A stretch of DNA of 64,000 bases from Vitrella brassicaformis CCMP3155 (GCA_001179505.1 CDMY01000989.1:1-64000), one strand, 5' to 3'; numbered from the stretch's first letter, positions 25,022-61,800 are shown. The notes: generated from the letters alone by a model not told the origin. Numbers and translations: made by a program.

Positions 25022-27154
25022 ATGGCGACGCCATCTGGAGGTGTGCAGGCATCGGTCTTCCAGGACAAGACACTGCTGCTGTTCCTCGTCTTGTTCGCCG
25101 TGGCATACTGCTCGCAGCCACTGCTGGTGAGTCACCACCCCAGGAATGAGTAGATCAGCCATGCATGGATGAATGAATGAACGAGCAGATCAGCCAGGCA
25201 GGCAGGCAGCGAGAAATGCCGTGGTCATATGAGCCGTTTGTGTCTGCTTATGTGTGTGTGCTTTGCTTCACAGGTGGATGCTGTGAAGTATCAGGGCGCT
25301 GCAAGCGTAAGCAACGAGGAACTTGAAGCACGCACACATGAATGCATCAGAGAGGCGGGACCCATTCAGTCAGTCATTCACTCATTGGAGTGGCTGTCTT
25401 GTCTGTCTGGTGTGCTGTGTGTCTTGCCATCGGTCCATCCATCAGGCGTCTACGTTTTTGTACTTGATCCCGCACTACCTGTCCATGTCACTCGTGGGCT
25501 TCCTCCCTGACGACGAGCGACACACAGAGGAGGAAACACGAAAGAACCCTTGGCTGGCGTGAGCAGAGAGGAACCAACACACACACACACACACACACAC
25601 ACAAGTGTGTTGTGGTGTGTTGTCAGTTGGAAGAAGGCGGGCATCATTTCTGCGATCGACATTGCACACCAGCTGACGGAAAAGGGTACCTATGCCCCGT
25701 CGATGACGGGAATGATTGCATTGCATGTCCATTTTGTGCGTTCTGTGTTGTGTGTATGTGTGTGGTTATCTTATCAGCTGGTTTGGTGTTTGCTGGGAGT
25801 GCGGTGTACATAGTGGTGGGCAGGTAATAATTGGCTCCATAATTACCGCTATGAAGCCAGAATTCTTTGAATATAATCATGGTCAAAAACACGTTCCCTT
25901 TCTTTTAGCTCTACCATCGTGTGGACAGCCATCATGGTCACCATCGTCAACAGACGGCGGCTGGCACCAGCTCAGTGGTTCAGCATCGCACTCATCTGCG
26001 CCGGCATCTCTGTCAAGGTGAGTCCTCACACAGCACGGCATCCACTCCGTGCGATTCCTTGTATGTTTGTATGTGTGTGTGACCAACACATATCACACGT
26101 ATATACCAATCAGGCTTTCTCGATCGACTTTGATTTCCACAATGATGAGTTCGTGGGCGCCGTGCTCACACTCGGAGCCGCCATTCTGGTCAGCCAGGCC
26201 GCCAGGCAACGACCAGCCACACAGACACCCAGCAGAAACGACGTGTGTGTGTGTGTGTGTGCATGTGGTTTAGCAAGGGCTGACTTTTGCTGTCAATGAG
26301 AGATTCCTCACCGGGTAGATTTGACACGGAAGTGATTCACTCGTGATGGATGGACGGATGTGTGCAGCCCCGGTGCGGTGTCTGGTCCCAAGTTGGTTGC
26401 CATGATGGGCATCATCAACCTGGCCCTGCTGGTCGTGTGGACGGCCGTGTGGACGGTCCCGCAGTTCGACAAGCTGGTGCTGTCCAACATCCGGCGGCAC
26501 AACGGCCATACGGGGGCCATCCTGATGGGCTTCCTGGGGCTGTTCCTCTGCGGCTTTGTGCACTCGGCCACACTCTGGTACCTCATCAAGAAAATCGGTA
26601 AGGCTGTGGGGTCATGCATCGACAGCTGGGATGGAGGTGGGAAATGGATCGAGGTTCTATGTGTGTGTTTAGGTGCGGTGAGTAGTGGTGTGATGAAGGG
26701 TCTCAAGACGGCGAGCGTCTTCGTTCTCAGCCACTACTTCTTCTGCAGCATACAGGTCAGTGAGTCGGCCAGCACATCACCCCATTCACTCCTCCGTGCT
26801 TGACTGTGACTGTGTGTGTGTGTGTGTGGGTGTGTGCAGTCGAGTCAGTGTCTGACGCCCACCAAGGCCATCTCAGCTGCCGTGTGTGTGCTGGGCGTGC
26901 TGCTCTACTCCATCTGCACACCACCCGACGCAGCCGCCGCAAGAGCCGCCGGCCCCCCACCTCCTCCCGCCGACAAGACCGTGAAGCGCGGCGACAGCAA
27001 GCCCTTCCGCCTTCGGTCGAATGAGCACCTGGGCCTGCTCGAGTCCTTTGCGGATGAGCAGCTCGAAGAAGGGGCGGCGTTCCACTCTAACGAAGAGGGC
27101 GGCGGCCAGAACAGTGATGACACTGGCAAGGGGGAGGCGGGGGCGAAGAAATGA
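25022..27154 (+). CDS. Drug/metabolite transporter (DMT) superfamily, nucleotide-sugar-transporter-like, about 10 TM
   Basis: Multiple hydrophobic exons: LLLFLVLFAVAYCSQPLL, AGLVFAGSAVYIV, VWTAIMVTIVNRRRLAPAQWFSIALICAG, FVGAVLTLGAAIL, GAVSSGVMKGLKTASVFVLSHYFF, AISAAVCVLGVLLYS. Confidence 0.72.
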
Positions 27155-27280
27155 CAGAAAGTGTAGCGAGTGGTCGGTCAATGAAGCAGTAAGGTCGGGG
27201 TGGTGTACAGTGCGAGCAGAGCTATGAAAGGCTGAGTGGGTCTCTTGGCAACGATGCGAGAGACAGAGAGAAAGAAAGAA

Positions 27281-27311
<31 letters not shown>

Positions 27312-27871
27312 GTGTCGGACAGGTATGTATGTTAGGCATTTGCATTTGGTTGCTATGCACGAGATCGATGCATGGATGGATGGATGGATGGCCTGCCCGC
27401 CGCCCTCTCTCTCTTTGGTCACTCTCTGTGTGACTGTGTGAGAGTGTGGTTGTATTTATGTCTGTGGCGGCGAGGACCGGGAGGGACTTTCACAGACACA
27501 CTGGCCGAGAAGAGTTTTGGAGCGCTTTACTGACTACCTCAATCCTTATGAAAGGAGCCTGCTCGTTTCCCCTTGAAGGATTTACCGATCCGTAAATTCG
27601 CACAAAGGCTCCCTTACTTGCCATGCCCTCCCTTGTCCCTCACTTGTGTGTGCAATCACATTCAATGAAATTTGACGGACAAGTAAAATTGGCCGTCACA
27701 GTCAGCCCAACAAGCGAGACACGAGTGCTATGTCTACTAGTTAAGCGTCGGAAGCCCTTTCGCCGAGTCTGCACACGCCCTACACGCATGACGTGATGCC
27801 ATACACGTACACTCAGCGACATGGATGGATGCAATCTATCAAGCCGACAACATGATCCATACAAACCTGCA

Positions 27872-30800: not shown

Positions 30801-31866
30801 GAGCTCGGGCTGCAGGGGAGACATCCCGGTTGCGCAGCGATGCCGATGGGACGCCCCCTGCACGCATGGGGATGAGCTTCCGCGACGGCGAGCGGCTGAC
30901 AGCGGCTGGTGCGTCTGCTGGATGCGCAGACTCGTCCTGTTGTTTTGGCTCTTCCTGCACTGGCGCAACTGCTGCTGCTGCTGCTGCTGCTTTGGCGGTG
31001 ACGACGGAAGGCGTGTTCTGCACGGCTGGGGCCGAAGGCCTGACTCGCCTCTCTCTCACGCGGATGCAGCTCTTGGATCGCCGGTCGATGCTTGTCGCTG
31101 TGGCGTCTTTGGCCTTCTGTGGCTCGCCTTGTTTGTCTGTCACGGTGAATCCTGCCTTGGTGGGCGACGACGGCTGTGTCCGCAGGTGGGTGTGCTTCTC
31201 GACGCAGCAGGAGTCCTCTCCCTCCTTGTCTCTGGGTGAGACAGGCGACTGGTCTGGGGGGAAATGTGAGAGGATCTGCTGGTCGGTGAGACGGCCGCCG
31301 GTCCTGAAAATGGCGTTCTCCCACTCCCATGGTGAAGGAATCTCGTTGGTCTCGCCCTGTGTTTGCAAAGTGGCCACACGGGAGAGATGGATGCATGGAG
31401 TGTGTTTGTGCTGCTTCGTCTCTACCAGTGGGTGGATGCCCTTAGCAGTGGCGAATTTGAATATGTCTCGCACCAGCAGGGCAAAGTCGGGGCCGTGGTT
31501 CATGTGCTTGAGGTGCGCCAGCTCGTGGAAGAGAATGGCCAGCTGCGTCGGACGGCTGATCAAATCCTGACACAGCCGGCGACGCGAAGGGGACTGTCGT
31601 TTTCTCTGTCTCCGTTTATGTGTGTTCATTGGGTACGTTTGGTGCTTCTTTCTTGCGTATGCGTATGCGTATAGTGGCGAGCCACCGTATCTCGGTGTAC
31701 ACTTCACCGTCACTGCCCTCACGCCTGCACACACCGTCACCCTCTCTTCACTGCAGCAATCCATCGACGGATGGATTGATTCACTCACTTGACGATGAGA
31801 GGGTCTTTGATCGTGACCCCGGCCTTCTTGGCCTGGCAATCATGCTCAGACAGAAACGAGTACCTA

Positions 31867-31904
<38 letters not shown>

Positions 31905-32275
31905 TGAAATATGTAATATGTCATGTGTGTCCCTTTGTCTGGCTTGCGAGTCATTCATTCATTCATTCATTGGATGGTCCACCGTAGTTTGAAGTGTCTG
32001 CAGATGGGCGCGGCCACCTTGGTGTGCAGCTCGTGAAGAATCTCAGTCACCTCCTTCCGACGACATAGCCACACCCTCTCACCATTCAACTGGGTCAGCA
32101 CACACGCACATTTGAGCACAGAGAGGCGCTTGTCGCTCGATTTGCTCACGATTGTGTGGTTGAAGGTGAAGTAGTGTGCCTGCAGCATCGAGTCACCGGC
32201 AAGGGCGCCGCGAGGAGGGGAGCGCACACCGCCGACAGCAAAGGGGGACAGCGAACGGCGATGTGACGGAGACAC
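27872..32275 (-). CDS. WLM/Wss1-like (HExxH) zinc metallopeptidase domain followed by a very long low-complexity region
   Basis: EILHELHTKVAAPICRHFKLR/YSFLSEH...AGVTIK and LAILFHELAHLKHMNHGPDFALLVRDIF. The long ORFs 29962..31839 and 27872..29737 can be joined by GT-AG introns. Confidence 0.65.
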
Positions 32276-32298
32276 ACCTGATCGACAGATCAGAGCAC

Positions 32299-33969: not shown

Positions 33970-34019
33970 TGTGTTGGATCTTGAGCCGTGTCGATTCACT
34001 GTCACAGTGACGTCTCAAG

Positions 34020-35364: not shown

Positions 35365-35674
35365 TGGCTGTCTGTTTGTGTCGGCTTCGTGCGCCCGGCC
35401 TTCCGTGGATGCGATTGATGCATGTGTACATGTGAGGGTTTCTGTGGGTGGGGGGTCTGGTCATGCAGTGCTTTGGGTGTCACGGGCCGCAGGGAATTGT
35501 TCTCTTTTCTGTGTGATGTGACTGACATGCATCATATCAAGAGCTACAACGGATCTGATTGTTTGATGAATAAAATAAAGCGTCACGGCACGTTGCGGTC
35601 CATAGTGTGTATGTATGTATGTCACAGCAATTTATGTACATCATACTGACATACACTCTGTCTGTTCTGTTCTC

Positions 35675-36624: not shown

Positions 36625-36759
36625 GCTCACAGCCTGAAGGTAGCCTGAAGGCTCTTCCCAGCTGCTGCGACGCGAGTCTGTTTGTCTGTGTTGCCGTGGC
36701 TTCTCGTGACGATGGTGGATGCCGACAGGGGATGCTTTCAGCAGCTGACGGAGGAGGTC

Positions 36760-36772
36760 TGCGCGCTTAGCT
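36760..36772 (-). promoter_or_regulatory. Motif variant AGCTAAGCGCGCA (1 mismatch)
   Basis: Plus strand tgcgcgcttagct between the divergent ATGs at 36624 and 36921. Confidence 0.5.
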
Positions 36773-37270: not shown

Positions 37271-37308
<38 letters not shown>

Positions 37309-40300: not shown

Positions 40301-43269
40301 CAAGTTAAAAGTTGTGTTTGTCAGGGTGTGGACGATCGTCGGTCGAGTGCGTCTAGCGTGGCGTCGCCGCCGCCCCGGGAGACCCCCGACGAGCTCATCA
40401 CCGTCACCACCACACCACACGGCGGACAGGGGCTGCTCTATAAAGGTGCCGGGCGCTGGGGGAGACCTACACTCACACCGCTCCACACACACATACGTCA
40501 TCCACACGCAGTATCTGTGAGGGGCGCGCTGTTCCTCATCCTGTCTGTGTGCGTGTGCGTGTGCGTGTGTGTGTGTGTCTGCAGGGAGTTATGTGCGGTC
40601 TGAGGTGTGTCGTCGGCTGAGTTGGCTGCTGGAGCGGAGTCTGCAGGTCACCAAGAGGGAGCTCATCGAGAAGAATATACTCAAGGGTAGGCAGGCCAGC
40701 TGGGCTGTCTTGGGCGCCGCCCCTCGTTCGTTTGTTCAAACTCCTGTGTCTGCCTGCCTGCCTGTGTGTGTGCCTTTGTCCATCTCCATGTGTGCAGGCA
40801 TGTCGATAGTGAAGCGGTCGTCCCGCCCGCTGGCGGCCTTCTTTGCCAACAGGAGACCCAAGCTGCAGGACCTCATCAACCAAGGCAGTAAGGACACCAC
40901 ACACACAGACACACACACAGACGCACACACACACGGCGCAGACACAGAAGGACCGCATGGATGGTCGGCCGGTCTGTCTGTCTGTCTGTCTGTGCAGAGC
41001 TGCCCCCCGACTACCTGTCGACCTTGTTTCCCCCCGAGCGTCGTCTGGCGCCCCTGTCCACCCCGCCCCACCTGCTGCCCACCATTGCCCTCTCCTCCCC
41101 CACCCCCTCGCCCAACGCAGCATTCCCTCCCGTCTCGGCCAACAGAGGGGCGGTCGTGGCTGGACAACATCCCACTGGCAGGACACACTCACCCCCAGCG
41201 CTCATTCAGCAACAGCAGCAGCAGCAGCAGCAAAAACAGCCGCCGGCGGTTTCTGTATCTTCACCTGCACCTGCGCCTGCAGCTGCACCGCCCGCATCTG
41301 TCGCGAGGCGGGCAGAGGAGGAGAGGGACCCTGCGATTGTGGAGATATGGCGCAAGGGCGAGGTGGTCAAGGACGGCACTCCTCCTGGGGTGGGCGTGGG
41401 CGTGGGCGTGGGGGTGGGGGTGGGGGTCAAGAAGAAGAACAACAGTCACCACGTCAACGAGGCCGTGGGAATGATGAACGGCCCGGTGCAAGTGACGACA
41501 GCCCCTCAGGTGGACTTCATCTCGATGCTCGCCAAGGGAAAAAAGCAGCAGCAGCAGCAGCAGGATGCCGCCATCAATCGGCACGTATACCCCCCCGCCC
41601 CGCTGATCCCCCCGCCCACCCTCTCACCAGCACCAGCAGCAGCAGCAGCATCAGCAGCATCAGCAGCATTAGCATCGGCAGGAGGAGGAGCCCATGTGAT
41701 GGAGAAGTCTCTGTCCAACCCCAATCTGGCGCGGCTCCACCAATCGCCCAGTCCCACGGGCAGCGACGGCCCTGAGGTGCGCGTGTACCCCTTCGACCAC
41801 CACCAGCAGCAGCAGCAGCAGGACGCTCCTGCTGGTCCTCCTGCTGCTGCTGCTGCTGGTGGTGGTAGTAGTGGGGGCTGGGGAGGGGGCAGCACCAGAT
41901 CGCAGGCATCGGACCAGGCGGTCAGTGAGGGAGACAGACAGACAGACAGGCAGACAGAGAGACAGAGAGAGAGAGGGGGCAATGTTCTCTGTCTGTGTGT
42001 GTCTGTGCATCAATCCATCCATCACTCAATCAGGACATCGAGTATGAGGTTGAAGAGACGGTGGTGGTCGACCAGTGCCAGTCATACGTCTACCTGAGGA
42101 ACAGGCCCAACTACTACGACGACGCCATTCCCACTGCCACCAGTACTAGTGGGGCACGAGGGATACTCGCCAAGGGCAGGAAGGGCCGGTCGGCTGACAG
42201 CAGCCCCACCCCCCACCAAGTGGACCACGACCACGGCTCAACGTCCTCTCCCCGAGACCTCACCATCGCCGCCCTCGGCCCCCCACCCCTGCCGAGCGGG
42301 CTCAGCAGCCTCATCACCGACAAACGATCTGGTCAGTGTCGACCAAGGAAGGCGCGAGAGCACACAATGGTGGCACGGAGGAGACATGTTGTGTGTGTGT
42401 GTGTGTGTAGGTCACCATTACCAGGCGTGGGCGTGTGAGTCTGCGGACGTGCCGCCTCCGCCCCCCCAGGCGCCCCACCAGTCGGGCCTCATCGGCGGCC
42501 AGTGGGCGAGGGCGTCGCCCGACGACCTCCGGCGGCACATCAAGTCGCTGCAAGAAGTCATCACTAACCTCAACGCACAACTCAACCATGTCAGCCGACA
42601 CGCCCACAGACAATGGGAGACTGTGTGACGATCTGTCTGTCTGTCTGTCTGTCTGTCGTGTGCCTGCAGGAGCGAGAAGAGCGTCGAGCGGCCGAATCTC
42701 AATGTCAGACGCTGCAGAGCCAACTCCGCACCCTGGAGGCGGCGGCCTCCCTCCCTCCTTCGCCTCCCTTGCTGCCCCCATCCCTCTCGCCATGGCACCT
42801 CTCGCCCATCCCACCTGACCTGGACCAACACCAGCTCCACAGATCATCCTTCGCCCACCCGCATTACCGCCACCTCTCAGTGCGCACACGGACATCAGCC
42901 GACCTCTCGCAGCCCTCCTCGCCCCTCCCGCCACACTCACCAGCCGAAGAGCCCACCCAGGGCGGGTTTGCCATCCCATGGGGGTTTGGTCGAGGAGGTC
43001 GGGTGGCGGCCATCACACCAACCCACCAGCAGCAGCAACAGCAGCAGCCCCACTCGCCTGTGAGCCCGGCGGGCGGTGGCGGCGGCGGCGGCGTTGGTGT
43101 TGGTGTTAGTGTTGGCGTTGGCGCTGTGGTGATGCGGGCGGCTGCTGGCGGACATGGCCCGCCGGGGCATCGTCTGTCCCTGACTGATGAGATGGGCAGG
43201 AATGCGCCCGCTTTTCTGCAGACAGTCCAAGGCTTCATTAGGAGTGACCACGGCCGTCCGCAGAGATAG
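36921..43269 (+). CDS. Large multi-exon C2-like + RasGAP-like protein with two RPEL-like motifs and a C-terminal coiled coil
   Basis: C2-like strands (LHRVGELDL...FDKWVPLKL...EVRVQLAY). GAP-like helices (YLRAYSRLFLRSRIKKTFGPVIAK, ITHLFGPCLVLPVEYGVL...PTPNAKKLL). RELIEKNILK and FFANRRPKLQDLINQG. Coiled coil LRRHIKSLQEVITNLNAQL/ERRAAESQCQTLQSQLRTLE. The start codon and domain calls come from motif recall. Confidence 0.6.
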
Positions 43270-46441: not shown

Positions 46442-46842
46442 ATGGATGCAAAGCATCCAGTTGAGGAGGTGGCTGTGCCATTGCGGGCAATGCTCGGTGT
46501 TGTGGAACTCGGCATAATGACGCAGGTAGGCACTGCATGCGACGCGATGACTGACACGGAGGGAGCGGAGGGCGCAGAGGCTGCACTGCATGCGTGTGGC
46601 TGTCGTCTGTCTGCCCTGCAGGTGTCCAGGACTTTTGAGGAGTTGGTGACGAATCAGACGCTCATCGCCCGCATCCAGAACGTCATCCAGAGCCACAACC
46701 TCGGCGGCTTCATGCAGTACAGTGAGCGGCGCTTCACTCGCTGGAAGACCACTGAGGACTACGCCGTTGAGCGCAAGAAGAAACTCTATTACCTCAGCTA
46801 CGTGATGGAGAACTGCGGCAAGCTGGGCAGCTGGGTATATAT

Positions 46843-46877
<35 letters not shown>

Positions 46878-47462
46878 CATGGGCGACAGGGAGGGGCACA
46901 TTGATTGGTGGATTGCTCCTCGGTGCTTGCTGTCTGTGTGTGTGCAGGCGCCTCTGATGTACTATGCCGAGTCGTTCAAGCGTGTCAAGCTGCCCATCCA
47001 GGTGGGCAGGCACCCCAAGGGCACTCATTGATGCGGTCGTCGGGGTGCATTCCTCTGTGTTCTCACCCCCACCGGCCGCAGGTGTGTGAGGACAAGGTCA
47101 GCTCTCTGGACAAGGCCGTGTTCGACAGCCGCCCGCACAGCGTGCGAGCCTGGTCACTCTTCAGGTAGGCGCAAGCGTACCCATCACCCCATCCAGCCAC
47201 TCCCTGTGCCTCTGACTCTTCATGTGTGTGTCCTATGCATAGTCTCTTTGTGGAGGGCTGCACTCGCGAGTTGTCGTTGAAGCGCATCTTGGTGGGCGGC
47301 CAGCTGCGCGACAAGCTGGGCAGCAGCGTGCTGACGGTCTATGGCCCGGGGGACCTGCACGCCAACCACCCCTTCGCTGCAGGATACGATGGCACCGACC
47401 CCCGCGTCAGCGGTAAGTTCAAGAGAGAGGTGGTGGGAATCAGCCGAGGTAGAGGCGGCTCA

Positions 47463-50919: not shown

Positions 50920-50963
50920 CCTGATAGCCCGTGAGCAGATCTTTTCACCGCCGATCCATCCAT

Positions 50964-50976
50964 TGCGCGCTTGGCT
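50964..50976 (-). promoter_or_regulatory. Motif variant AGCCAAGCGCGCA (2 mismatches)
   Basis: Plus strand tgcgcgcttggct in the 129-bp spacer between the divergent ATGs at 50919 and 51049. Confidence 0.4.
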
Positions 50977-51048
50977 GGCAGACTCCCCCTCTCGGGGTTT
51001 TCACTCATCGCTGGTTTTGGCATGTTCTGAGGATGGTGGTTGGAAGCG

Positions 51049-53018
51049 ATGCTCAGCTCCCGTGATCTGCTGAAGCTGAAGCAGTCATCGACATTTTTGA
51101 TGCGCATCCGGCCCTTCAGCACCACTGCAGCAGCACCACCAGCAGCAGCTACACCAGCTCCACCAGCTACACCATCAGCACGCCCAAGCAGGGCACCATG
51201 CAGCTCTGCCCATGTGCACCAGCATCTCGACGTTGCGCGCGCCCTCAACAGCCTGGCAAGAAAGCGCGGCCACACGGCGGCTGACCGCGAGAGCTGGCGG
51301 GTGTCGCTGCTCAGATCTCTCAGCCAAGCCCACCGTTCGTCGGCAAGGGAGACCGCCCTGGTGCTCAACGCCTGCAGAAGATGCCCGTTGGTCGCTGATG
51401 AGGAGGGCGGCGACTTGGTGCGCAGCGTTGCGGAGGCCTACACGCGACGGGCGCGGCAGATTGTCCCGTCGTTCAACGCTCTGGGTCTGACGGTGGTGTG
51501 CAAGGCCTGGTCGCAGCTGCGGCCGCTGTTGACTGGGCTGGAAGGAGGTCTGGTGGACGACGACCTGCTGCTTCGGGTGAGCGAGCGGCTGCAGACCCAG
51601 CTGCAGCGCATCACGCCCCTCACCCTAGGCAACCTCCTCAACGCGCTCGCCCGCCTGGACTTCCGCGACAAGGCGCTCCTGACGAGTCCACCGATGCAGG
51701 AAGCCGTCAGGCGGTGCCTGCCGTCGCTCAAGGCTTTGGACTTGGTGCAGGTCATCAACGCGTTTGCGCGTCTGGAGTGGCGTGATGTGCCGCTGCTGCA
51801 CCTGCTGGCGGACCGGTGTGTGGACCAGGTCGAGTACATGGACTGCGGCGGGCTGAGCCTGGTGGCGAATGGGTATGGGCGGCTGGAGGTGAGGCATGAA
51901 CGGCTGTTTGGCCGGATGGCGGACAGGCTGGCGTCGTGTGGGCACTCGTGTGGGCTCAGGGATGTGGCCATGATACAACACGCATTCGCTAAGTGAGTCG
52001 AGTCAGTGGGCTGGGCGATGAATGGATGGATGGATGGATACCAAGATGATTGATCGATTGCATGTGTATGTGGCGCAGGTTTGACTTCCCCTTCACGCCC
52101 AGCGTGTTCGAGGCCACCTGCAGTCTGCTGCCGGCATGCCTCTCGTCCGCCCCGTCCGCCTCACCCCCCTCCCCCTCCGACCAGCAGCACTCCCTCACTC
52201 TCATCCTGACGGCAGCGGCCAAGGTGGGCTTCAGGGACCTCAGCGCCATCGCCCCACTCATGCAGGTCCTGTTTGACGGGTCGGCATCGGCCCCGCTGCT
52301 GCACTCTCTCACTCCGGGGCAGCTGGCCATGCTGACATCAGCCATGGGGCAGCTGGCGCAAAGCGACGAGAGGCTCGTGGTCGGCCAATTGGCTGAGGGG
52401 GATGATGAGCGTGTTTATCGCGAGTGGCGTGGGTGGTGGGGTCAGCTGCTGCAGCAGCTGGAGCAGCAGCTGCAGGGCAGGGCCCTCATAGTCACGGCTG
52501 CAGCCGGCACTGAAGAGGCCTCTGGACCACATCGACAAACAGCGGCTACAATCCCCCCTCATCAGACAGGCCCAGCAGCAATCGTCGACCTGGACGAGCT
52601 GCCCGATGGACAGGAGGACAGTGACAGTGACGACACCCACAAGAATGATGAGTGGGTGGACGGGCGGGAGACGGCTGAGGGGAAGGGCGACGGGTGGGGG
52701 GAGATGGAGCTGTCCACTGTGTGCCGGGCGCTGGCGGCCGTCAAGTGCCGTCACATGCCTATATTCGATGCCGTGGCGCAACTCATCCAGGTCAGTCGAA
52801 CAGACAGGCAATGAGGGGGCCCGTAAGACACCTATCACACACCGTGTGTGTGGTGTTCAGGCGCCTGAGAGTGTGCGTGGCTGGTCGGCGTGGTCCCTCC
52901 TCACTGTTCTGCGGGCCTTCGCCACCCTCAAAGTACACATGCACACTCACACACTCACACACACACAGACAGACAGACAGACACGAGTCCGCCCTGGCGG
53001 CTGGTTGATCGATGCATG

Positions 53019-53054
<36 letters not shown>

Positions 53055-54718
53055 TGTGCAGCATCACCATGACGGTTTGTTGAGGCGCCTTGACAGTGCT
53101 GTGGATGATGTGAGTTGGGAGCTGGACCTGTCAGCTGCGTGTGAGTGGGCCTCGCTGAGGTGGGCCCTCACCGGCCAGCATCACGACGGCCTCCTAGCGA
53201 CCGTCGAGCACCTCATTCAGCGGCACAGACACAGAAACACAGCTCGCCAACCGGCCAGGCAGCAGCAGCCACCACCGTCATCGGCTCCACATGTGCCGCC
53301 CCGTGACCCTGAGAGATGGACGGTGGCGGCATCGCGCCCAAGTGGCCTGCAGACGCCCCTTGTCGACCTGTTGGCCTGCCTGGCCGTGCCAGGGGGGCCA
53401 AGATGCATCGAACAGAGCGATGATGCCGCGTCAGCCGCTGCGTTGCGTTGGTATCGGGTGATGCCGTGCACTAGTGAGGGTGTTGGGGGGTTCGACGTGA
53501 GCACCGTTGGTGTGCTGGAGAAGGGATTGTCGGCACATTGCAGGTGGGATTGGTGGAGAGAGAGAATGTTCTCTCTCTCGTCATGCATACAAACTTGTGT
53601 GTGTGTGTGTGTGTGTGTGGTTGATGCAGGCGCTATGGTGAGATGGCTGAGCGGCTGGGTGGGGCGCTCTCCGCCGAGATCGGTGCTGTCATCGACGCGC
53701 AGACACTACCCACAGGTGAGCAAGCAGCCAATCGACCTAACCTGCCCACTGTGGGTGCATCGCCCATCTGTGTGTGTGTATCCCATTGGTGGCTGTTTGC
53801 TAGGTCTGTTAGCCAAGTTGGATGGTCTTCAGCGGCTGCTGGACTTGACATGGCCCCAAGGTATGTGTGTGCGTGTGCCATGCAGGCCATCCATCCGTCC
53901 ACCTACCTCTGCTCTCCCTTGCAGTTGCAGCAGCAGTGAGGCCGCAGATCGAGTCGGCTCTCCAAATCAGGACCACCAGCACCAAAGACAAGCAGCCACA
54001 GCCAACCGAGGCACCGCCCCCACAACCGCGCATGGCCGCCCGCCTCCCCTCGTCCACCATGAGGTCCCGCGGGCCGTTCAGCACCACAAGGCGGCGACTC
54101 GCACCACCACAGCAGACATCCACAGCTGACAGGGGGCGGAGGCAGGACACTCCACCATCACTATGCCTCAAGGGCGGTCATGCTGCGGCTGACGATGGTG
54201 GTGGTAGTTCTGAGGTGTGTTGGTCGCTGTCGGCTGGCCAGGCGGCCCGCCAGCTCATGAGAAGGAGGATGGCAACTGATCAAGGTGGTGGGAGTGACGG
54301 TGTCTGGGGTGTTGGCCATCCTGTGATGGTGCCGCGGCAAGTACTGGAGGCCTGGTGCGAGTGCGGTGATGACGGTGATGCTGCGGGAGACGGAGGACGA
54401 TACACTGAAGACGACCGGGCTCGACCGCTGGGAAAGGCGCTGGTGGATGTGTCGAGGCGGATTGTGAGCCATGAAGGCCTTGGGAGCGGCATGGTGGCCC
54501 TTGTGCTGCTGCCGACCATGGCTGACTTCGGGGCGACTGGTGTGTTGGGCGGCGGCGGTGGCGGCGTGTCTATGGCGACTGACTGGTGTGCATACCGACG
54601 TGAGTTGGCAGCGGTGCTGCGGGTGAGGGAATGGGCGCATGGTGATGATAGTGGCGTTGGTGGTGCTGGTGTGCCCGTGCCAGTGTGTGTTTCGGTTAGA
54701 GACTCGACGACCGAATGA
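51049..54718 (+). CDS. Helical-repeat organellar RNA-binding protein (heptatricopeptide/OPR/FASTK-RAP-like), probably mitochondrial
   Basis: Repeats of about 37 aa such as ITPLTLGNLLNALARLDFRDKALL, LKALDLVQVINAFARLEWRDVPLL, MDCGGLSLVANGYGRLEVRHERLF, LRDVAMIQHAFAKFDF. The presequence MRIRPFSTTAAA is basic and Ser/Thr-rich. Confidence 0.75.
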
Positions 54719-56685
54719 CCGACTGAATGACTGCTGATGGATGGATGGATGAACCACACACACACAGACACAGACACACACACACACACAGGTGTCACTC
54801 ACTGCCGTCATGCTGTCATCATCATCATGCGATCCGATCCGTTCCCACCCACCCACACAGACAAACCTCCCTCTGACTCTCACAAGTGCAGACAGTCGAG
54901 TCGGCCACTCAGTCAGGTTCATTCAGAAACACAGCATTAGTGAGCGGGCTGGTCAGTCTGGATGGCTGCAAAGGTGCCAACTGCTGAACCTCCGCTCTCC
55001 CTCACTCCTCCCCTCCCTCCACCGTACCATAAACACCCACCACCCACACCACAGAAACTGCTGCAGTCAATGCGTCCACCTACTCTCTCGGCAGAGTATT
55101 TCGTATGTGTGTGTGCGGGTCGATATCTCTCTCCCTCCCTCCCTCCCTCTGGACAAGTATGGGTGTGACCAAAAACACTTGTCTGTGAGCTGAGCTGTGT
55201 GCGACCGACCAGTCATCGAGTGCACCCTCACTCTCAGCCAGTTAGTGCTGCCTTCGGTCTGGTCGCCAGTCAGTCAGTCAGGTCGTGGCTGAGTAATTCT
55301 GTGTGGCTGGCCGATGGGAGCGAATCCGTCGATCGATCGACCTTCTTTCTCTCTACGCGAGAGTGAGTGAGTGTGTGGCCCGGCCCGCAGATGTGTGCAT
55401 GAAATGGATGGAGCCTGGCCGGCAGGGAGGGCAGTGGGAAGCACTGACCGGCCGACCGGCCGACAAAAATAAGAGAAACACCATTAGCCAGCCAGCCAGC
55501 CAGCCAGCCAGTCTCTCTCTTTCTGCCAAAATCTCTCCGATGGAGGGAGGGTTGGACGAGTTAGCATCCTGCTGGTTCCTTATCAAGAGGGCTGGTCAGG
55601 GTCCCACATATCCACGCAATATGTGCAGTCAGTCAGTGCCATCCAATTGCGCAAAGCATGCCGGCTGGTTCCACGCCACCATACTACAGAAAAGGATGGC
55701 GGCAGCCCTGTGCTCTCTCTCACCTGTCTGTCTGTCGTCCATACGCACCACAGCCGCCCTCCCAACACACACACACGCATCATGATGCACACACGCCCCG
55801 AGGCAGGATGGTGAAAGAATTCCTCGGGGGGAAAAAGACAAGACATCATTACGAGAGTGAGGGGAGGGCAGGGCGGGGGGAGAGCACCGATCGGCCGGTC
55901 GATCGGCCGGCCGATGGACATACACACACAAAACTGCTTGCAGACGTCGGCCAGCAAGAGACGAATTCGCCTGGAGCGAACCGCCCTGCTGGCTGGGCCG
56001 CGCTACGCTACGGATGGACGGATTGGTGGGTGGATGCATGGATATGCACACGGACGCACTCATTCACGTAGGCAGGAGGCAGACAGGCAGGCAGGCAGGG
56101 GACAAGAGTCAGGAAATCTCATCTCTCTTTCGGCAGGTATCTAGTGTAGCAGTCAGTCATTTCTCGCGTCATTCCAAGGGTCTGGACTGCCCATGTTCCA
56201 TCTCTCCGCGCTGCTCTCTCCATCATGAGCCCGACGCGACGGGGCGCGGGTGGCGTATGTGCACATACGTCACCGCGACCAGTCACACAGAGGCCATGAT
56301 GGACAGAGCAGCACCGAGCAGCAACACTGAGAAAGATACACACCGATGAATGGTGCTGCACCAACAAGCACTTGGAGGGAGGGAAGAAAGTCAGTCTCAA
56401 CCAACCGACTCTACTGATCTGATCTCAACCAACTGAACTGAACTGAACTGAACTCTCGCTGCTGAGCAGAACGAGTCGACTGCCTGGCGCACGTCCGTCC
56501 AGTCAGGCAGGCATTTCTTTATATGCATGCACGTATGCATCCCCCCTCCATATGTCTCTCTTACAACAGACAGACAGACAGGCGGACGGACGGACAGACA
56601 GAAGAAAGAGAGGACAGGCAGGTCAGCCGCCGAGTGAGTGAGGGAGTGTGAGGGAGTGTGTGTGGTGTCCGTGTGTGGTGTGTGT

Positions 56686-59600
56686 CTATGCGGCGGCCTT
56701 CTCCGTGGCGTTGGTGGCCGTCCCTGCTGTCGGTGCCGCACCGCCGGGCGGGGCGGCGCCCGTCGCCGTCTTGGGCGCGTTGGGGTCGAAGTTCGCTGCG
56801 GCGGACACACACAGACCACACACAACACAACACAACACAGTAGCCAATTTCGCTCTCTCTCTCAGAGTGTTTGGTGTCTGGTGTGTTGTGTTGTGTTGTG
56901 TTGGTTGTCGTACCGAAAGACCTGACTCTTGCCATGGGCGACTGGTCTGGTGCGGGTCGCTCGGCGTCCTCGAGCTTCCAAATGATCTGGCCGTACTCCT
57001 TGATGGAACGGTCAGTCGTGAACTTGCCCATACTCGCGGCGGCCTGATTGATCAAAGAAAGGCCCAGTGGATGGAGCAACAGATGCACCGATGGCCGGTG
57101 TGGGTGGGTGGGTGTGCGTCAATCATCATGTGACTCGCCTTGATGGACGTCTTGATCCAGTTGGTCTGGTCTTTGTACAGCGCGTCCACCTGCTCGTTGG
57201 CCTGCACACACACCACACACACCACACCACACAGATCCGTGTGTGTGTATGTATGCAGCAGCAGCAGCTGCTGCTGTGTGGTTGGCCTTGACCCACCTTG
57301 CAGTATGAGGGGAAGTCGTGGCAGAGGATGTAGAAGTCGCCGTTGTACCCTCCGCCGTTGTTCCTGATCTTCTCAATCTGTCACCCACACACACAAACAC
57401 AAACACCACACACACAACAGACATGCAGTCCCTCCCTGCCTCTCTCCCTCTCCCTCCCTTGCTACCAGTCCGACGAACTCCGAGTGCGCCTCTCCGTCTC
57501 CGAGTGAGAATTTGCCGCTGACGATGGCGTCCATGACCTCCCGCAGCTCAGCGCTGATGGGGTAGTTGCCGTTCTTGGCCTTCTCACGGATGCCGGCCAC
57601 CTCGGGCTCCAACGCGCCAAAGATGAACATCGTGTCCTACACACAACAGACAGACAGACAGTGGGGGGTGGGCGAGAGGGGTGGCAGGTGTGAAGGGTCA
57701 AGGTACCTACCTCTCCGCATTCCTCCCTGATTTCGACGTTGGCTCCGTCCATGGTGCCGACGATGAGCCCGCCGTTCATGACGAATTTCATGTTGCTCGT
57801 GCCCGACGCCTCGGTGCCGGCCGTCGAGATGTGCTGAGATATGTCTGATGGAGGGATGAATGGATGGATGGAGGCACAGAGGGACAGAGGGACAGATGGG
57901 TGGAGCAAATAACACCGCGTGTGTGGTTGGCGCTGACCTGATGCGGGGATGATGGTCTGGGCATTGGACACGTTGTAGTTGGGCATGAACACACACTGAC
58001 AGACAACCGGGGACACACACAGAGACAAATGGACACACACAAACGAAAAGGCCACAAACGAACGGGGCAGCAACCCACCACACAACACGCCACACACTCT
58101 TGTGTGCCACCCAGCCGACCTTGAGGTACTTGGATGTGTCCGGGTCGTTGTTGAGGACGAGGCCGATGTTGTTGCATAGCTTGATGATGGTCTTGGCCAC
58201 GGCATACCCGGGGGCCGCCTTGCCGCCGATCAGACACGCACGCTTGACCTGCTTATCGCGGTCGCCGGGGCTCATCTTCTTCAGCTTGAAGTAACTGCGT
58301 CACACACACACACACACACGGGTCATGACCCACACAGAGAGGAGTGAGTGTCTGTCTGCCTCTCTGTCTGTCTGTCTGTCTGTCTGTCCGTGTGTGTGGG
58401 AAGGGGGATGTTACCGACCGGTGGATGATGTAGAAGCAGTTGATGAGCTGTCTCTTGTACTCGTGGATGCGCTTGACCTGGATGTCGAACAGCATGTTCT
58501 CGGGGTCCAAGTCGATGTCGCAATTCAACTTGATCTACACAACACAACACAACGCAGGCCCACACAGCGGAAACAGAGAGACAGACAGAGTTATCTGCCT
58601 GCCTTTGATGTCGTGTGGTGTGTGTGTGTACCCATTTGGTGAGTTTGACTTTGTTCTGCTTCTTGACGTCAGCCCACTGCTTCTGCAACTCAGTGCTGTC
58701 CTGTGCACATCACACACACACACACACACATGGAGCCCAGTGTGTCTGTGTGGTTGAGTGGACCCGTACGAGGTGGTTGACGAGTCCCTGGAGCATGGTG
58801 AGTTCCTTGAGCCAGCTGTCGGACCCCAGCCACTCGCTGAACAAGTTGGACAAGCCACGGTTGGCGCAGTGAATCCTACACACACACACACGCACACACA
58901 GACATACACACGAGATGATAGCCAGCCGCACGAGAAGGCGTGTGTGTACCATCTCCGGGGCGTGACGCCGTTGGTGACGTTGACGAACTTGTCGGGCTGG
59001 CCCTTGGCCTGGTCATCGACACACACACCCATACACAGATGGGATGCATCCACGCATCTCCCTGTCTGTCTGTCTGTCTGTCTGTGTCTTGTATGTGACG
59101 GTGGGTGGGTAGGTGGGTACTGGACCTTGTAGTAGTCGACGAACTCCGGGAAGAGGTCCTTCTTGACGAGTTCCGAGTGGATGGCTGCCACGCCGTTGAC
59201 CTTGTTGGAACCGATCACCGCCTGATCCACCCATCCAATGTGACGCAACACCGCCCGCACAGCACACAGGTGACCCTGCTTGCTTGGTGTGTGTGTGGAG
59301 GGGGGGGCAGTACCTACCATGTTAGCCATTCGGATCATCTTCTCGTATCCCTCTTGGTAGATGGACATTTTGGAGAGTTTCTCGCCGACGTCGCCCCACG
59401 ACTCGCGCACCTCACACAGGAACTTGTAGTTGATGTCGTTGATCAACAGCAGATGGCTGACAGACACAGACAGACAAAGAAACAAACAGAGAGAGAGGGA
59501 TGTCGAGTGCACTGTGTGGTGATTTGATGGCTCTGTGGCTGCCCTACCGCGGAAGCAGTTTCTCGATGAGGTGTGCGGGCCATTTCTCGAGGGCCTCGGG

Positions 59601-61243
59601 CAGCACCGTGTGGTTGGTGTAGTTGAAGCACTACACACACACATCCACACACCACTCCTTGCCGTGCGTGTGCATCCCTCTCTCCCAACCTCCCTCTCTC
59701 GGTGTGTCCGCACCGACCTGTCTCGTGAGGTCCCATGCCTTGTCCCAGTCGAGCCCCTCGATGTCGATGAGGAGGCGCATCATCTCAGGGATGGCGATGG
59801 TCGGGTGGGTGTCGTTGAGCTGGAAACACACCTTGGACGGCAGCTCGTCCCAACTGCGGCCCTCCTTCTTCTTGAACCTGATGATCAATGGATGATCAAC
59901 CCACACACACTTGTTGGTGTGTTGGTGTGTGTGATTGTTGGCCGGTGCGGTGTGGTGTGGTGTGCGGCACGTGCCTTCTGAGGCAGTCCTGGATGGTGGC
60001 GCAGACGAAGAAGTACTGCTGCTTCAGACGCAACTCCTTCCCCTCCCACCTGACCAAACACACACACACGTCTCCATCTGGGCACTAGGGTGTGTGAGTG
60101 TTTACGTGTTGTCGTTGGGGTAGAGGACGGCCGAGATGTACTCGGCACGCTGGCGCTCCTTGACAGCCTGCAGACCACACAGGATCGACATACACACACA
60201 CACACACACACAGAGGGAGGGAGGGAGGGAGGGAGGGAGATGACCACAATGGTGGCGTGGGAGTGCATTGTGTGCAGTGTGCGTACGTCGAGGAACTGGC
60301 CACGGTTGAAGGCATGGAAGTCAAACTCCTTGCCGGGACACGCTGCATCCAACACGCAACACACACACACACACACAGATGGATGGATGGGATCCCCTCA
60401 CCCTCTCCCTCTCTCTCTTTGGCAAGGCACGCACCTTTCCAGAGTCTGAGGTTGATGGTGTTGTACGTGTCGAATCCCGGGATGGGGTTGTCGTACGCCA
60501 TGGCCTGCACGATCTCGCCGCCCGTCCAGCGGTGCCGCTCGCGACCCTTGTCGTCCTTGTAAGTGTCCACGTGACTGACACACAACACAACACAATACAC
60601 ACACAAAGAGCCGCCGATAAGTGGAGCGGACTCATGTGGTGTGTGGTGTGTGTGTTGCCCCTCCATCAATGCAGTGGCTCACGCACGCACCCGTAGAACC
60701 GCACGGCGTAGGTGACGTCGGGTCGCTCGATTTCCCATGGGTTGGCGGTGACGAGCCAGTAGTCCGGGTGCTCCACCTGACGGCCCTCGACGATCTTCTG
60801 CTCGAAGATGCCGTACGTGTACCTGACACACACACCAAGGCAGCCCATCTGTCTGTCTGTCTGTCTGTCTGTCTGTTGTCTGTCTGTGTTGTGTGTGTGC
60901 GAACTAGCCTGATGCCGTAGCCCCAGACGGCATAGTTGAGCGTGGCCATGGAGTCGAGGAAGCAGGCAGCCAGACGGCCCAGACCGCCATTGCCCAGCGC
61001 CGGGTCGTGCTCGTGCTCATACAACTCCTCCTGAGGGAGGGATCGATCCATCAACCAGCCAACACCATGTTAGCCACCGACTGGCGAGTGAGTGAGTGTC
61101 TGTGTGTGTGTACCAGGTTGTATCCGATGTCTGCGAGTGCCTTCTTGTAGTTGGGCTCGATGTCCAAATTCACCAACGCGTTCTGCATCGCTGCACAACA
61201 CAACACAACACAACACACAACACACAGGACAACACACACCACA

Positions 61244-61276
<33 letters not shown>

Positions 61277-61800
61277 TGTGTGTACCCCTTCCTAGCAGGA
61301 ACTCTAGGGAGAGGTAGTAGCACCTCTTGACGTCCTTGGCCGTGAAGAACTCGTTGGTGTCGTTGAAGGTCTCGATCAGCCGGTCGCGGATGCTGAAGGC
61401 CGTCGCACGGTAACACTCCTCCGTCGCAAAACTGAACCGCGTCGCCGCCAACGTGTACTCCTAAACACACAAAACAAATCACAAACCAAACCACGCATCA
61501 TAACACACCACACCACACCACACCCCGCCAGAGAGGGGCAGGTACTCGACACAAGTGCCCACGCACTACACCATCCATCCATACCACGTGGTTGACGATT
61601 CCCCTCTGGATGGAGCCGACGTCCGGTCCGAGGTAGTACTCCATGAGCTGCCATATCTTGTTGCGCTTGGCGTCGGCGTTGGGGTCGAAGTCCTTCTGGT
61701 GCATCCCCGCCATGTCTCGAGGCACGGCGCCCGTCAACTTGGAGAACGATGCCTTGCGCATCATCTCAAAGTTGTGGTCAGCGTGAGGGTCAAAGGCCAT
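56686..61800 (-). CDS. Glycogen/starch (amylopectin) phosphorylase, GT35, more than 20 exons
   Basis: [92 protein letters not shown], the PLP-lysine motif [24 protein letters not shown] and [14 protein letters not shown]. Confidence 0.97.

Follow-up and report, generated by a model that had tools for sequence, protein, structure and literature searches.

The locus and its introns

The window analysed here is the whole 64-kb stretch formed by bases 1-64000 of contig CDMY01000989.1 of the alga Vitrella brassicaformis, an alveolate, as a preliminary description made from the DNA alone had correctly supposed. It contains one fully verified gene, an alpha-glucan phosphorylase gene on the minus strand, whose 25 introns serve as the reference set, their splicing having been confirmed by two independent cDNA assemblies (Table 1). 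A further 104 introns from 23 other genes were predicted by a composition-blind gene finder that capped introns at 200 nt and recovered 23 of 24 coding gold-standard introns exactly. This gene finder under-calls coding sequence in poorly conserved genes and thereby adds false introns, so that the weaker signal of the predicted set is a lower bound. When five annotated neighbouring genes were parsed, the annotated protein length was recovered for just one, which lies outside the window, and exhaustive enumeration of parses for such genes is degenerate.

The verified introns are canonical U2-type introns with a GT or GC donor (22 and 3, respectively), a YAG acceptor (AG with C or T at -3 in 25/25) and an upstream adenosine, and their removal is seen in mRNA. 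Vitrella introns are short, with a median length of about 95 nt. Neither a match to Rfam nor a U2AF gene was found anywhere in the 64-kb window.

Table 1. Introns and control regions in the window, grouped by gene.
Feature	Coordinates	Strand	Evidence and remarks
Phosphorylase 5'UTR intron, strict	61926..62098	-	cDNA L003; strongest predicted hairpin, -84 kcal/mol, 54 bridging bp
Intron, G/T-rich 3' arm only	61461..61584	-	cDNA; position and phase common to Eimeria and Cystoisospora (coccidia)
Intron, strict, (AC)12(AG)8 then 53-nt A-free G/T tract	61191..61285	-	cDNA; ancient position, shared with coccidia; predicted hairpin -38.4 kcal/mol, z -0.79
Intron, AC arm only, CTAAC branch-like motif	61031..61113	-	cDNA
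GC-AG intron, strict, AC + (CAGA)n then (GT)5	60823..60908	-	cDNA
Intron, strict	60575..60690	-	cDNA
Intron, AG-rich 5' arm then (GT)9	60343..60434	-	cDNA
Intron, strict, CT-rich middle	60168..60286	-	cDNA
56-nt intron, strict	60050..60105	-	cDNA; z -2.6
GC-AG intron, strict, 4 bridging bp	59878..59974	-	cDNA; predicted fold
Intron, strict, 2 bridging bp	59631..59717	-	cDNA; predicted fold
Intron, AC arm then CT/TCTG arm	59457..59547	-	cDNA; ancient position, shared with coccidia
Intron, strict	59222..59317	-	cDNA
Intron, (ACAG)n 5' arm then GT arm	59009..59125	-	cDNA
Intron, strict	58876..58949	-	cDNA
Intron, strict, (GT)10	58701..58769	-	cDNA
Intron, strict, nearest upstream A 57 nt from 3' splice site	58535..58631	-	cDNA
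Intron, strict, AC + (CAGA)n then (GT)9	58295..58418	-	cDNA
Intron, weak AC arm, long G/T arm	57996..58119	-	cDNA; ancient position, shared with coccidia
Intron, AC arm then C/T-rich 3' arm, no bridging helix (-5.4 kcal/mol)	57845..57937	-	cDNA; predicted fold
Intron, C-rich 5' arm then TCTG/GT arm, no bridging helix (-7.0 kcal/mol)	57637..57710	-	cDNA; predicted fold
Intron, AG-rich 5' arm then G/T arm	57378..57465	-	cDNA
Intron, strict, internal (CAG)n(CTG)n palindrome	57202..57296	-	cDNA
GC-AG intron, C/A-rich then C/T-rich, 1 bridging bp	57044..57138	-	cDNA; predicted fold; ancient position, shared with coccidia
Last intron, strict	56796..56913	-	cDNA; z -2.7
Unspliced 3'UTR, internal control, all four tract types in mixed order	54761..56685	-	transcript-verified
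Candidate intron, GT..AG ends	25559..25626	+	sequence only, no gene model; fold z -0.59
Predicted intron, AC/CAGA then (GTCT)n	40888..40997	+	exact gene-finder prediction; fold z -0.33
Predicted intron, (AC)15 then GT	46835..46947	+	exact gene-finder prediction; fold z -2.74
Candidate intron, GT..AG, 129 nt, in frame, stop-free	52933..53061	+	inside annotated 1048-aa gene 51049-54718; fold z -3.49
Ankyrin paralogue 1, intron 3, possible conserved end-to-end helix	17521..17585	+	
Ankyrin paralogue 2, intron 3, helix lost by deletion	18669..18729	+	
Ankyrin paralogue 3, intron 3, helix kept, with compensatory changes	19660..19734	+	
Ankyrin paralogue 4, intron 3	21502..21570	+	

Polarity of the intron halves

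The 5' half is A+C-rich and the 3' half G+T-rich in 24 of the 25 verified introns (sign test p=1.5e-6), and polarity is likewise positive in 75 of the 104 predicted introns (p=7e-6). A polarity of CA-rich 5' and GT-rich 3' intron halves had been proposed in the preliminary description, and it proves stronger than first stated. The five intervals given there as examples, namely the four predicted or candidate plus-strand introns outside the ankyrin genes and 61191..61285, read as described; the last is transcript-verified, and two of the others are predicted exactly. The proposed range, 25559-61285, does show the polarity, but its starting point is arbitrary, as the pattern holds over the entire window.

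The AC-GT layout can be defined strictly as ACACAC in the first 50 nt after the 5' splice site together with GTGTGT in the last 50 nt before the 3' splice site (Lin et al. 2016, PMC4691745). Sixteen of the 25 verified introns (64%) are of this type and none has the reversed arrangement; the corresponding counts among predicted introns are 15 and 2 of 104, giving 31 strict introns among the 129 sampled (about 24%). Profiling by intron position, a check that had been suggested beforehand, places AC toward the 5' end and GT toward the 3' end: over the deciles of the verified introns, AC-tract cover begins at 0.32, 0.50, 0.36, 0.28 and 0.11 and declines to 0, and GT-tract cover starts at 0.03 and ends at 0.41, 0.57, 0.63 and 0.57. 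Perfect sense runs across the window tell the same story, with 31 AC-type runs in 5' halves vs 7 in 3' halves and 11 vs 53 for GT-type runs (Fisher OR 21, p=1.9e-10). AG and CT tracts are polarised in the complementary sense (5' vs 3' halves, 17:5 and 5:13, respectively), and base composition changes from A.29 and T.13 in the 5' half of verified introns to A.09 and T.38 in the 3' half.

This polarity is restricted to introns. Tracts are present in unspliced UTR and intergenic DNA, but the AC-then-GT order is absent there. With gaps of up to 100 nt, AC is followed by GT 33 times within introns, against 12 for the opposite order; outside genes the counts are 24 and 22, and the orders are flipped across exons (6 vs 25). 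A strand-symmetric count of such transitions is uninformative as a test of polarity because the two orders alternate by construction. A cause acting at the level of DNA, such as palindrome-generating mutation or Z-DNA or nucleosome effects of (AC/GT)n, would agree with the invariance of the AC-then-GT order under reverse complement; the order is identical on both strands, and strand arguments alone therefore do not dispose of it. Such a cause is nonetheless disfavoured and very improbable, given that neither order prevails at short range in the 27 kb of DNA outside genes (13 vs 11, 24 vs 22), that the order is reversed across exons, that the tracts abut splice sites and that the arms, as detailed below, are independent in presence and length.

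The 3' tract and the 5' stretch

The GT tract lies just before the acceptor. The last 30 nt before YAG consist of G.37, T.42, C.14 and A.07, in keeping with the earlier suggestion that a GT run stands in place of a polypyrimidine tract. The frequency of the AG dinucleotide drops to 0.016 in the fourth intron quintile and to 0 in the fifth, and the nearest A at least 10 nt from the 3' splice site lies at a median distance of 26 nt. The GT arm occurs without an AC arm in 5 of 25 verified and 29 of 104 predicted introns, whereas the AC arm alone is rarer (3/25 and 14/104); a GT tract is kept in 5 of the 6 verified introns lacking an AC hexamer. The longest perfect (GT)n in verified introns has 10 repeats and most have 2-5. 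A reading as pUG folds was dropped for this reason, as such a fold is reported to require about 12 GU repeats.

These properties bear on the possibility that repeats arise neutrally through high AC/GT slippage and are removed only where they harm splicing, the arms having no positive role. GU near the donor would then mimic 5' splice sites, and A-rich or AG runs near the acceptor would make decoy branch points or acceptors. The occurrence of all four tract types in UTR and intergenic DNA, the independence of the arms, the exclusion of AG from the last 40% of the intron and the scarcity of perfect runs in exons, which hold just 5, all speak for such a filter. On the other hand, introns are about three times as dense in tracts as the unspliced UTR of the same phosphorylase transcript (AC 15.9 vs 4.7%, GT 26.4 vs 10.8%), and the GT dinucleotide near the donor occurs at 1.15 times expectation after base composition, which indicates no specific avoidance. 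Moreover, some 3' signal is needed where there is no pyrimidine tract, the G/U tract being the sole candidate, and direction is kept in diverged paralogues lacking repeats. Purely neutral repeats are therefore an improbable explanation. The threefold density of tracts in introns over UTR requires more than passive filtering.

Folding and independence of the two ends

A second possibility is that the AC- and GU-rich ends were selected for base pairing, forming a helix that joins the splice sites, as in the (AC)m-(GT)n introns of teleosts, on which the two lineages would have converged. The helix would enforce the pairing of the right sites in genes packed with short introns and lower dependence on a polypyrimidine tract and U2AF2. 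Several observations agree with it. The strict definition taken from fish describes a majority of the verified introns; the five example introns all fold as end-to-end hairpins in predicted structures, as do most verified introns (mean 18.9 bridging bp, predicted). Comparison with dinucleotide shuffles, another suggested check, shows strict introns to be 19% more stable (-37.6 vs -31.7 kcal/mol, p=2e-4). The two halves mirror each other in composition (A5.29 and T3.38; C5.33 and G3.32), AG and CT tracts are polarised in a complementary way, a classical pyrimidine tract is absent, intron 3 of the ankyrin genes carries compensatory changes, and function has been proven in fish (PMC4691745).

Against this stands the independence of the two arms. 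The preliminary description had named independently distributed repeats as grounds for giving up its proposal, and this is close to what is found: the 5' AC and 3' GT arms do not co-occur beyond their marginals (OR 1.07, p=1 and OR 1.7, p=0.27, neither significant; Mantel-Haenszel OR 1.6), a result from two intron sets in one window with limited power. Arm lengths within introns are uncorrelated in this window (rho -0.18, -0.01 and -0.10), and no co-occurrence of complementary motif types within an intron was found. Foreign arms pair as well as cognate ones in verified introns (-22.0 kcal/mol for cognate vs -23.0 for non-cognate), while predicted introns show a weak advantage of cognate arms (permutation p=0.02). 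AC and GT arms co-occur across exons as often as across introns (15/24 vs 16/25). As arms of different introns pair equally well and cross-exon co-occurrence is as frequent, a helix says little about which sites match.

Bridging also survives shuffling within each half (16.7 vs 18.9 bp native), so the extra stability comes from compositional polarity. No more than 5 bridging base pairs are predicted for six of the 25 verified introns, which are spliced all the same, and in several introns the predicted helix would bury the 5' splice site itself. The structure-guided pairing first proposed thus holds insofar as the arms can fold into intron-bridging hairpins, but not as regards matched partners: the arms are independent, their lengths uncorrelated and, in the verified set, without cognate specificity. 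From their sequences, there is little sign that both ends evolved as matched pairing partners. Selection for pairing is a tentative explanation, less probable than not. Doubtful to a slightly greater degree is a genome-wide structured-intron system in Vitrella, and perhaps in chromerids, in which generic co-transcriptional AC.GU and AG.CU helices would define introns and replace recognition through the polypyrimidine tract and U2AF2.

Evolution of the introns

Five of the 24 phosphorylase intron positions are common to coccidia, including that of the most extreme AC/GT intron, 61191..61285. The 3' ends of the orthologous coccidian introns are rich in G+T and poor in A (T.37-.40, G.27, A.11-.14), and these introns showed neither an AC arm nor repeats. 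Shared positions combined with coccidian introns that lack repeats show that the polarity arose in place, within old introns. Descent of the introns from mobile elements with AC/GT terminal inverted repeats finds some encouragement in their inverted-repeat ends and hairpin potential, which resemble the introner elements of Amoebophrya (PMC7789003). For the introns at shared positions this origin is largely refuted by the coccidian comparison, in which position and phase agree, and in general it has very little probability: the arms consist of simple repeats that vary in type and length, the introns have no unique sequence in common and show no target-site duplication, GT/GC-AG splice sites are canonical and the arms are independent. 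The Symbiodinium orthologue has one doubtful non-canonical intron.

The ankyrin paralogues offer a view over shorter distances. Their introns preserve direction without long repeats. In intron 3, four two-sided changes fall in a possible end-to-end helix, a number reached by 35 of 500 shuffles, and the consensus fold varies with the alignment; two ankyrin introns have no common structure across paralogues. Both the alignment dependence and the missing common structure weigh against selection for pairing.

Two proposed end-specific signals

The explanation we favour, with a probability of about one half, is that two independent end-specific signals have been amplified by repeat slippage, pairing being a generic and possibly helpful by-product. 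Vitrella introns are ordinary short GT/GC-AG spliceosomal introns, and would follow a rule of their lineage at either end. On the 3' side, the stretch between YAG and the nearest adenosine upstream, probably the branch point (median 26 nt), is G/U-rich, nearly A-free and entirely AG-free; it lies where a polypyrimidine tract would be and would act both as a 3' splice-site signal and as an AG-exclusion zone. On the 5' side, the stretch after the donor is A/C-rich, sometimes A/G-rich, and U-poor; it would exclude from this part of the intron sequences resembling a donor (GU) or a U-rich acceptor, and may serve as a binding site for an enhancer protein. Visible microsatellites would result as replication slippage lengthens the simple repeats compatible with each zone, with AC, AG and CAGA in the 5' zone and GT, CT and TCTG in the 3' zone. 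We infer that the arms are read as protein or snRNP signals and that slippage and selection together build them. Many introns can fold an AC.GU helix joining their splice sites because the compositions of both ends happen to be complementary; this helix may aid some introns, and would be neither a partnership selected intron by intron nor a requirement.

By itself, such a two-signal rule does not account for the use of G/U instead of C/U in the 3' tract or for the abundance of C in the 5' tract. Counting against it are the mirrored compositions of the halves, as selection for pairing would produce, as well as the stability excess of strict introns, the two-sided changes in the ankyrin genes, the weak cognate advantage in predicted introns and the threefold tract density of introns over UTR.

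Either way, the polarity rule should improve gene prediction in chromerids, and the G/U-rich tract is the likely 3' splice-site signal of the lineage, with a milder form in coccidia. A layout of the fish type dominates the verified gene of a free-living relative of Apicomplexa, within introns older than the split from the parasites. If pairing is functional, this would be a striking convergence with fish, offering compact natural introns of 60-120 nt in which to study RNA structure replacing U2AF-type recognition; a genome-wide system, if true, would be the first outside vertebrates and the majority splicing mode in some genes. If it is not, introns can mimic the fish class with independent arms, a caution for structured-intron calls made from sequence only.

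Relation to known systems

The AC-to-GT layout was previously known as a splicing device in fish only. As the preliminary description had presumed, no report of it for any alveolate was found in the literature, and, the host lineage being alveolate, any likeness to fish introns is convergent. The (AC)m-(GT)n structured introns of teleosts and lamprey account for 0.09-2.29% of fish introns (Lin et al. 2016, Genome Res 26:12, PMC4691745), far from the Vitrella proportions given above, and exceed the stability of their dinucleotide shuffles by 33% (-88 vs -66 kcal/mol; PMC4691745), against 19% in Vitrella. Both have AC after the 5' splice site and GT before the 3' splice site, a pyrimidine tract that is weak or missing, a predicted bridging hairpin and native folds more stable than shuffles, and in both individual repeats are not conserved between orthologous introns. 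Fish structured introns are hundreds of nucleotides long, compared with about 95 nt. Unlike those of fish, Vitrella arms co-occur no more than by chance, long runs do not match long runs, cross-exon co-occurrence equals cross-intron co-occurrence, and AG, CAGA, CT and TCTG tracts share the polarity.

CA-repeat or CA-rich intronic splicing enhancers are known from metazoa, where hnRNP L is involved and YB-1 binds CAUC/CACC (PMC3458536). By analogy, the Vitrella 5' arms, AC-rich and near a splice site, could work through a protein and not through pairing; such enhancers are not known to be locked to the 5' end of every intron. Introner elements have been reported in Micromonas and Aureococcus as well as in Amoebophrya. 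The Amoebophrya elements have complementary ends of 8-20 nt whose hairpin can join exon boundaries, and these introns are mostly non-canonical, carry direct repeats at their boundaries, belong to families of repeats and are regarded as mobile (Farhat et al. 2021, PMC7789003). Vitrella shares with them an alveolate host and complementary intron ends, and differs in its canonical splice sites, simple-repeat arms, lack of families and some ancient positions.

The Vitrella 3' tract resembles the polypyrimidine tract and AG-exclusion zone of U2-type introns in being A-poor, AG-free and U-rich from branch point to acceptor, and in its position and range of lengths (median 26 nt, up to 57 nt). It departs from a polypyrimidine tract in having G and not C as its second base, often as (GU)n, and coccidian 3' ends show a milder G/U bias than Vitrella, free of repeats.

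Intron sets

The window has a G+C content of 58% and no gaps, and no Rfam family was found in it. Alpha-glucan phosphorylase is encoded on the minus strand at 56.7-61.8 kb; its hand-spliced product matches PDB 4bqe (alpha-glucan phosphorylase, E=1.5e-212) and is 100% identical to Vitrella brassicaformis CCMP3155 protein P0121, encoded on CDMY01000989.1 (assembly GCA_001179505.1), whose bases 1-64000 form the window. Transcripts from two independent sources (Logan SRR646408, contig L002; JGI 3300017297, contig L003) match the window in blocks that are each 98.5-100% identical to it. Threading of the cDNA defines 25 verified introns, of which 24 interrupt coding sequence and one the 5'UTR; they range from 56 to 173 nt, with a median of 95. 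Donors are GT in 22 and GC in 3, and acceptors are YAG in 25/25. The GC-AG type accounts for 3/25 verified introns and 13/104 predicted ones (~12%). Its share in most eukaryotes is roughly 1%.

Other genes in the window encode an alpha-amylase, four tandem ankyrin-repeat proteins, LRR proteins, a beta-lactamase-like protein, a polycystin-like channel, VPS9, TRM10 and a RESC6-like protein. A predicted set of 104 introns from 23 genes other than phosphorylase was obtained with our own generalised-HMM gene finder. Its intron state shares the intergenic background model, and its splice weights draw on nothing but exon-side bases, the donor (GT/GC) and acceptor (AG) dinucleotides and position -3, so neither the amount of AC/GT sequence in an intron nor its order can influence a call. 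When intron length is limited to 200 nt, the finder recovers 23/24 coding verified introns exactly, matches the annotated gene ends at 62409, 51049, 50919 and 48128, and places exact boundaries on two introns cited in the preliminary description (see table). When the four ankyrin paralogues are aligned, conserved blocks coincide with predicted exons and indels with predicted introns, a pattern that supports these predictions. Where genes are poorly conserved, the finder misses some of the coding sequence; the predicted set therefore includes false introns, and the signal measured in it is a minimum. All counts derive from a single 64-kb window, in which one gene is fully verified and the remaining introns were called by our own predictor.

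Coordinates of introns and other features in the window
Feature	Coordinates	Strand	Basis
Most extreme AC/GT intron, phosphorylase	61191-61285	-	transcripts
GC-AG intron	60823-60908	-	transcripts
GC-AG intron	59878-59974	-	transcripts
GC-AG intron	57044-57138	-	transcripts
Intron with central palindrome	57202-57296	-	transcripts
Phosphorylase 3'UTR	54761-56685	-	transcripts
AC-rich tract after stop codon	56656-56685	-	transcripts
(AC/GT)n run at end of one transcript contig	54774-54790		transcripts
Intron cited in the preliminary description	40888-40997		gene finder
Intron cited in the preliminary description	46835-46947		gene finder
Candidate optional intron	52933-53061	+	
Open frame around it	52492-54126		
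Ankyrin array	16614-22160	+	
Ankyrin intron 3, four paralogues	17521-17585, 18669-18729, 19660-19734, 21502-21570	+	
LRR gene copies in array	16614-17053 and 20624-21050	-	
Very long ORFs	27872-34005	-	

Polarity of introns

Polarity is nearly universal in the verified introns. The preliminary description had pointed to introns with an A/C-rich 5' part (AC arm) and a G/T-rich 3' part (GT arm), and the sequence is as described at all five of its intervals. AC-type tracts cover 32, 50, 36 and 28% of verified-intron deciles 1-4 and 0% of deciles 8-10; for GT-type tracts, cover is 2-9% in deciles 1-4 and reaches 41-63% in deciles 7-10. The compositions of the 5' half (A.29, C.33, G.25, T.13) and the 3' half (A.09, C.20, G.32, T.38) mirror one another, and 24/25 introns are more A+C-rich in their 5' than in their 3' half (sign test p=1.5e-6). 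As defined for fish (Lin et al. 2016, PMC4691745), the (AC)m-(GT)n class (here called strict) requires ACACAC no more than 50 nt from the 5' splice site and GTGTGT no more than 50 nt from the 3' splice site; 16/25 verified introns qualify and 0/25 have the reversed layout, against a share of 0.09-2.29% among fish introns. Other tracts are also skewed, with AG at 17:5 for the 5' half, and CT at 13:5 and TCTG at 16:4 for the 3' half.

The predicted set shows the same polarity in weaker form (75/104 positive, p=7e-6). AC hexamers lie near the 5' splice site in 29 cases and near the 3' splice site in 5, GT hexamers near the 3' splice site in 44 and near the 5' splice site in 5; 15/104 introns are strict and 2/104 reversed. 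For all perfect runs window-wide, the ratio of 5' to 3' intron halves is 31:7 for sense AC-type and 11:53 for GT-type (Fisher OR 21, p=1.9e-10). Only 5 perfect runs lie inside exons in the whole window. A reading in which the repeats are neutral and subject to a purely negative filter strikes us as improbable.

The 30 nt preceding YAG contain G.37, T.42, C.14 and A.07, and therefore form a G/U-rich tract, not a pyrimidine tract. Across the last two intron quintiles the AG dinucleotide frequency is 0.016 and then 0. The nearest A at least 10 nt upstream of the acceptor lies at a median distance of 26 nt; in 9 introns this distance is at least 35 nt, and its maximum is 57 nt, so that the G/T tract occupies the span from the probable branch point to the acceptor. 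Donors follow the consensus GT-A-(C/G)-G-(T/C), and in four GTACAC donors the AC run begins at +3.

Link to splicing and age of the introns

An AC tract followed by a GT tract is its own reverse complement and reads the same on both strands, so a DNA-level process needed explicit exclusion. Among tract pairs no more than 100 nt apart, AC-then-GT versus GT-then-AC order is 33 vs 12 in introns and 6 vs 25 across exons; in 27 kb outside gene models it is 24 vs 22. The unspliced, transcript-defined 3'UTR of the phosphorylase gene (~2 kb) served as an internal control; its AC, GT, AG and CT tracts follow no fixed order and are roughly a third as dense as those of introns (cover of 4.7 vs 15.9% for AC and 10.8 vs 26.4% for GT). 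The order counts outside introns and the mixed order in the 3'UTR therefore make AC-then-GT a property of introns, and a DNA-level cause of the polarity is very improbable. One transcript contig stops within an (AC/GT)n run, and the true 3' end of this UTR may thus be further on. An AC-rich tract, acacacaccacacac..acaccacacacac, directly follows the stop codon and is retained in both transcript assemblies.

Vitrella belongs to the chromerid algae, which are free-living and sister to Apicomplexa; the preliminary description was thus correct in assigning it to the alveolates. Orthologous phosphorylase proteins of the coccidia Eimeria flavescens (L004) and Cystoisospora suis (L006), threaded onto their genomic loci, give 7 introns in each species. 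In the protein alignment, 5/24 Vitrella coding introns have the exact position and phase of coccidian ones, corresponding to 4-5 per 7 coccidian introns, and the most extreme AC/GT intron is among these five. None of the coccidian phosphorylase introns contains ACACAC, and no more than one contains GTGTGT. Over the final 45 nt they are G+T-rich and A-poor (T.37-.40, G.27, A.11-.14) without repeats. Polarity and repeats therefore arose in place, in old introns, in the Vitrella lineage. The milder G/U-rich 3' bias seen in coccidia may be ancestral and the starting point from which the 3' arm of Vitrella was built. Introner elements have been described for Amoebophrya (PMC7789003), and a similar origin of Vitrella introns has a very slim probability, as the in-place rise of polarity at positions shared with coccidia speaks against it.

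Predicted pairing between intron ends

The preliminary description proposed that the two arms pair with each other. End-to-end AC.GU hairpins are indeed predicted in 5/5 of its examples (z -0.33 to -3.49 against controls), and predicted base pairs bridging the first and last 45% of the intron average 18.9 per verified intron. Stability also exceeds that of shuffled controls: the 16 strict introns reach -37.6 vs -31.7 kcal/mol for dinucleotide shuffles (p=2e-4), a smaller gap than in fish introns, at -88 for native sequence vs -66 for shuffles (Lin et al. 2016, PMC4691745). In ankyrin intron 3, a predicted 19-pair terminal helix is retained in 3/4 copies with four two-sided changes and is lost by deletion in copy 2. 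In this helix 88.9% of cells are paired vs 20-49% with slid partners, in a structure derived from the same four sequences and equaled by 35/500 shuffles; applied to the alignment made by the tool, RNAalifold arrives at a weak consensus that differs from it. On weak support, intron 3 may keep an end-to-end helix from the donor G, with putative compensatory changes such as CCA/UGG vs CCG/CGG. For two ankyrin introns, comparison of the paralogues yields no shared structure.

The proposed co-occurrence of the arms did not hold up in either set, nor did any preference for the cognate partner in the verified set. Arm presence behaves as an independent feature at each end: both arms are expected together in 15.96 verified introns and observed in 16, and odds ratios are 1.07 (verified), 1.7 (predicted) and 1.6 (Mantel-Haenszel), in tests that detect an OR of ~3 or more. 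Arm lengths are uncorrelated (rho -0.18 and -0.01; perfect runs -0.10), and motif matching within introns reveals no association of CAGA with TCTG or AG with CT (OR 1.1 and 1.2). Verified 5' arms pair with 3' arms of other introns at -23.0 kcal/mol vs -22.0 with their own (p=0.78), and among predicted introns the arms of one intron have a slight edge at most over mismatched arms (-18.6 vs -17.5; permutation p=0.02, rank test p=0.17). AC/GT pairs are as common across exons (15/24) as across introns (16/25), whereas in fish those across exons are rare (Lin et al. 2016, PMC4691745). Shuffling within halves leaves energy and bridging nearly unchanged (z -0.67; 16.7 vs 18.9 bp), a GT arm without an AC arm is commoner than the converse, and 6 verified introns of the well-expressed phosphorylase gene have 5 or fewer predicted bridging pairs, two of them folding at -5.4 and -7.0 kcal/mol. 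Pairing as the selected function of the arms is, on this evidence, rather unlikely. One phosphorylase intron carries a perfect (CAG)3(CTG)4 palindrome between its AC and GT arms, with a predicted -50 kcal/mol yet only 5 end-bridging pairs.

We favor, with a probability of about 0.5, independent end-specific signals with incidental or auxiliary pairing. By one rule, the G/U-rich, A-free 3' tract would act as the equivalent of a polypyrimidine tract; by a second, the tract after the donor would be A/C-rich and U-poor. Slippage would build the repeats at both ends and, since the two end compositions are complementary, a bridging helix would be thermodynamically available in most introns. What independent signals chiefly leave unexplained is why the two halves mirror each other in composition and why the 3' tract is rich in G and not C. 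On introns, the Vitrella genome paper gives number and size only. A literature search on Vitrella and Chromera introns and the topic of the fish study turned up no account of such a layout in organisms other than fish and lamprey, which, given incomplete coverage, is absence of evidence.

Other observations

The ankyrin array consists of four ankyrin-repeat genes in ~1 kb units that are 70-79% identical, introns included, and also holds two LRR gene copies; it is a segmental duplication and a useful natural experiment on intron evolution. One cited candidate intron, of 129 nt and free of stops, lies inside an open frame of an annotated 1048-aa gene; its retention would add 43 residues and its splicing would keep the frame, making it a candidate for optional splicing. 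Elsewhere, very long minus-strand ORFs coincide with a strong negative AT skew, and their predicted protein contains the YgjP-like metallopeptidase motif HELAHLKH.
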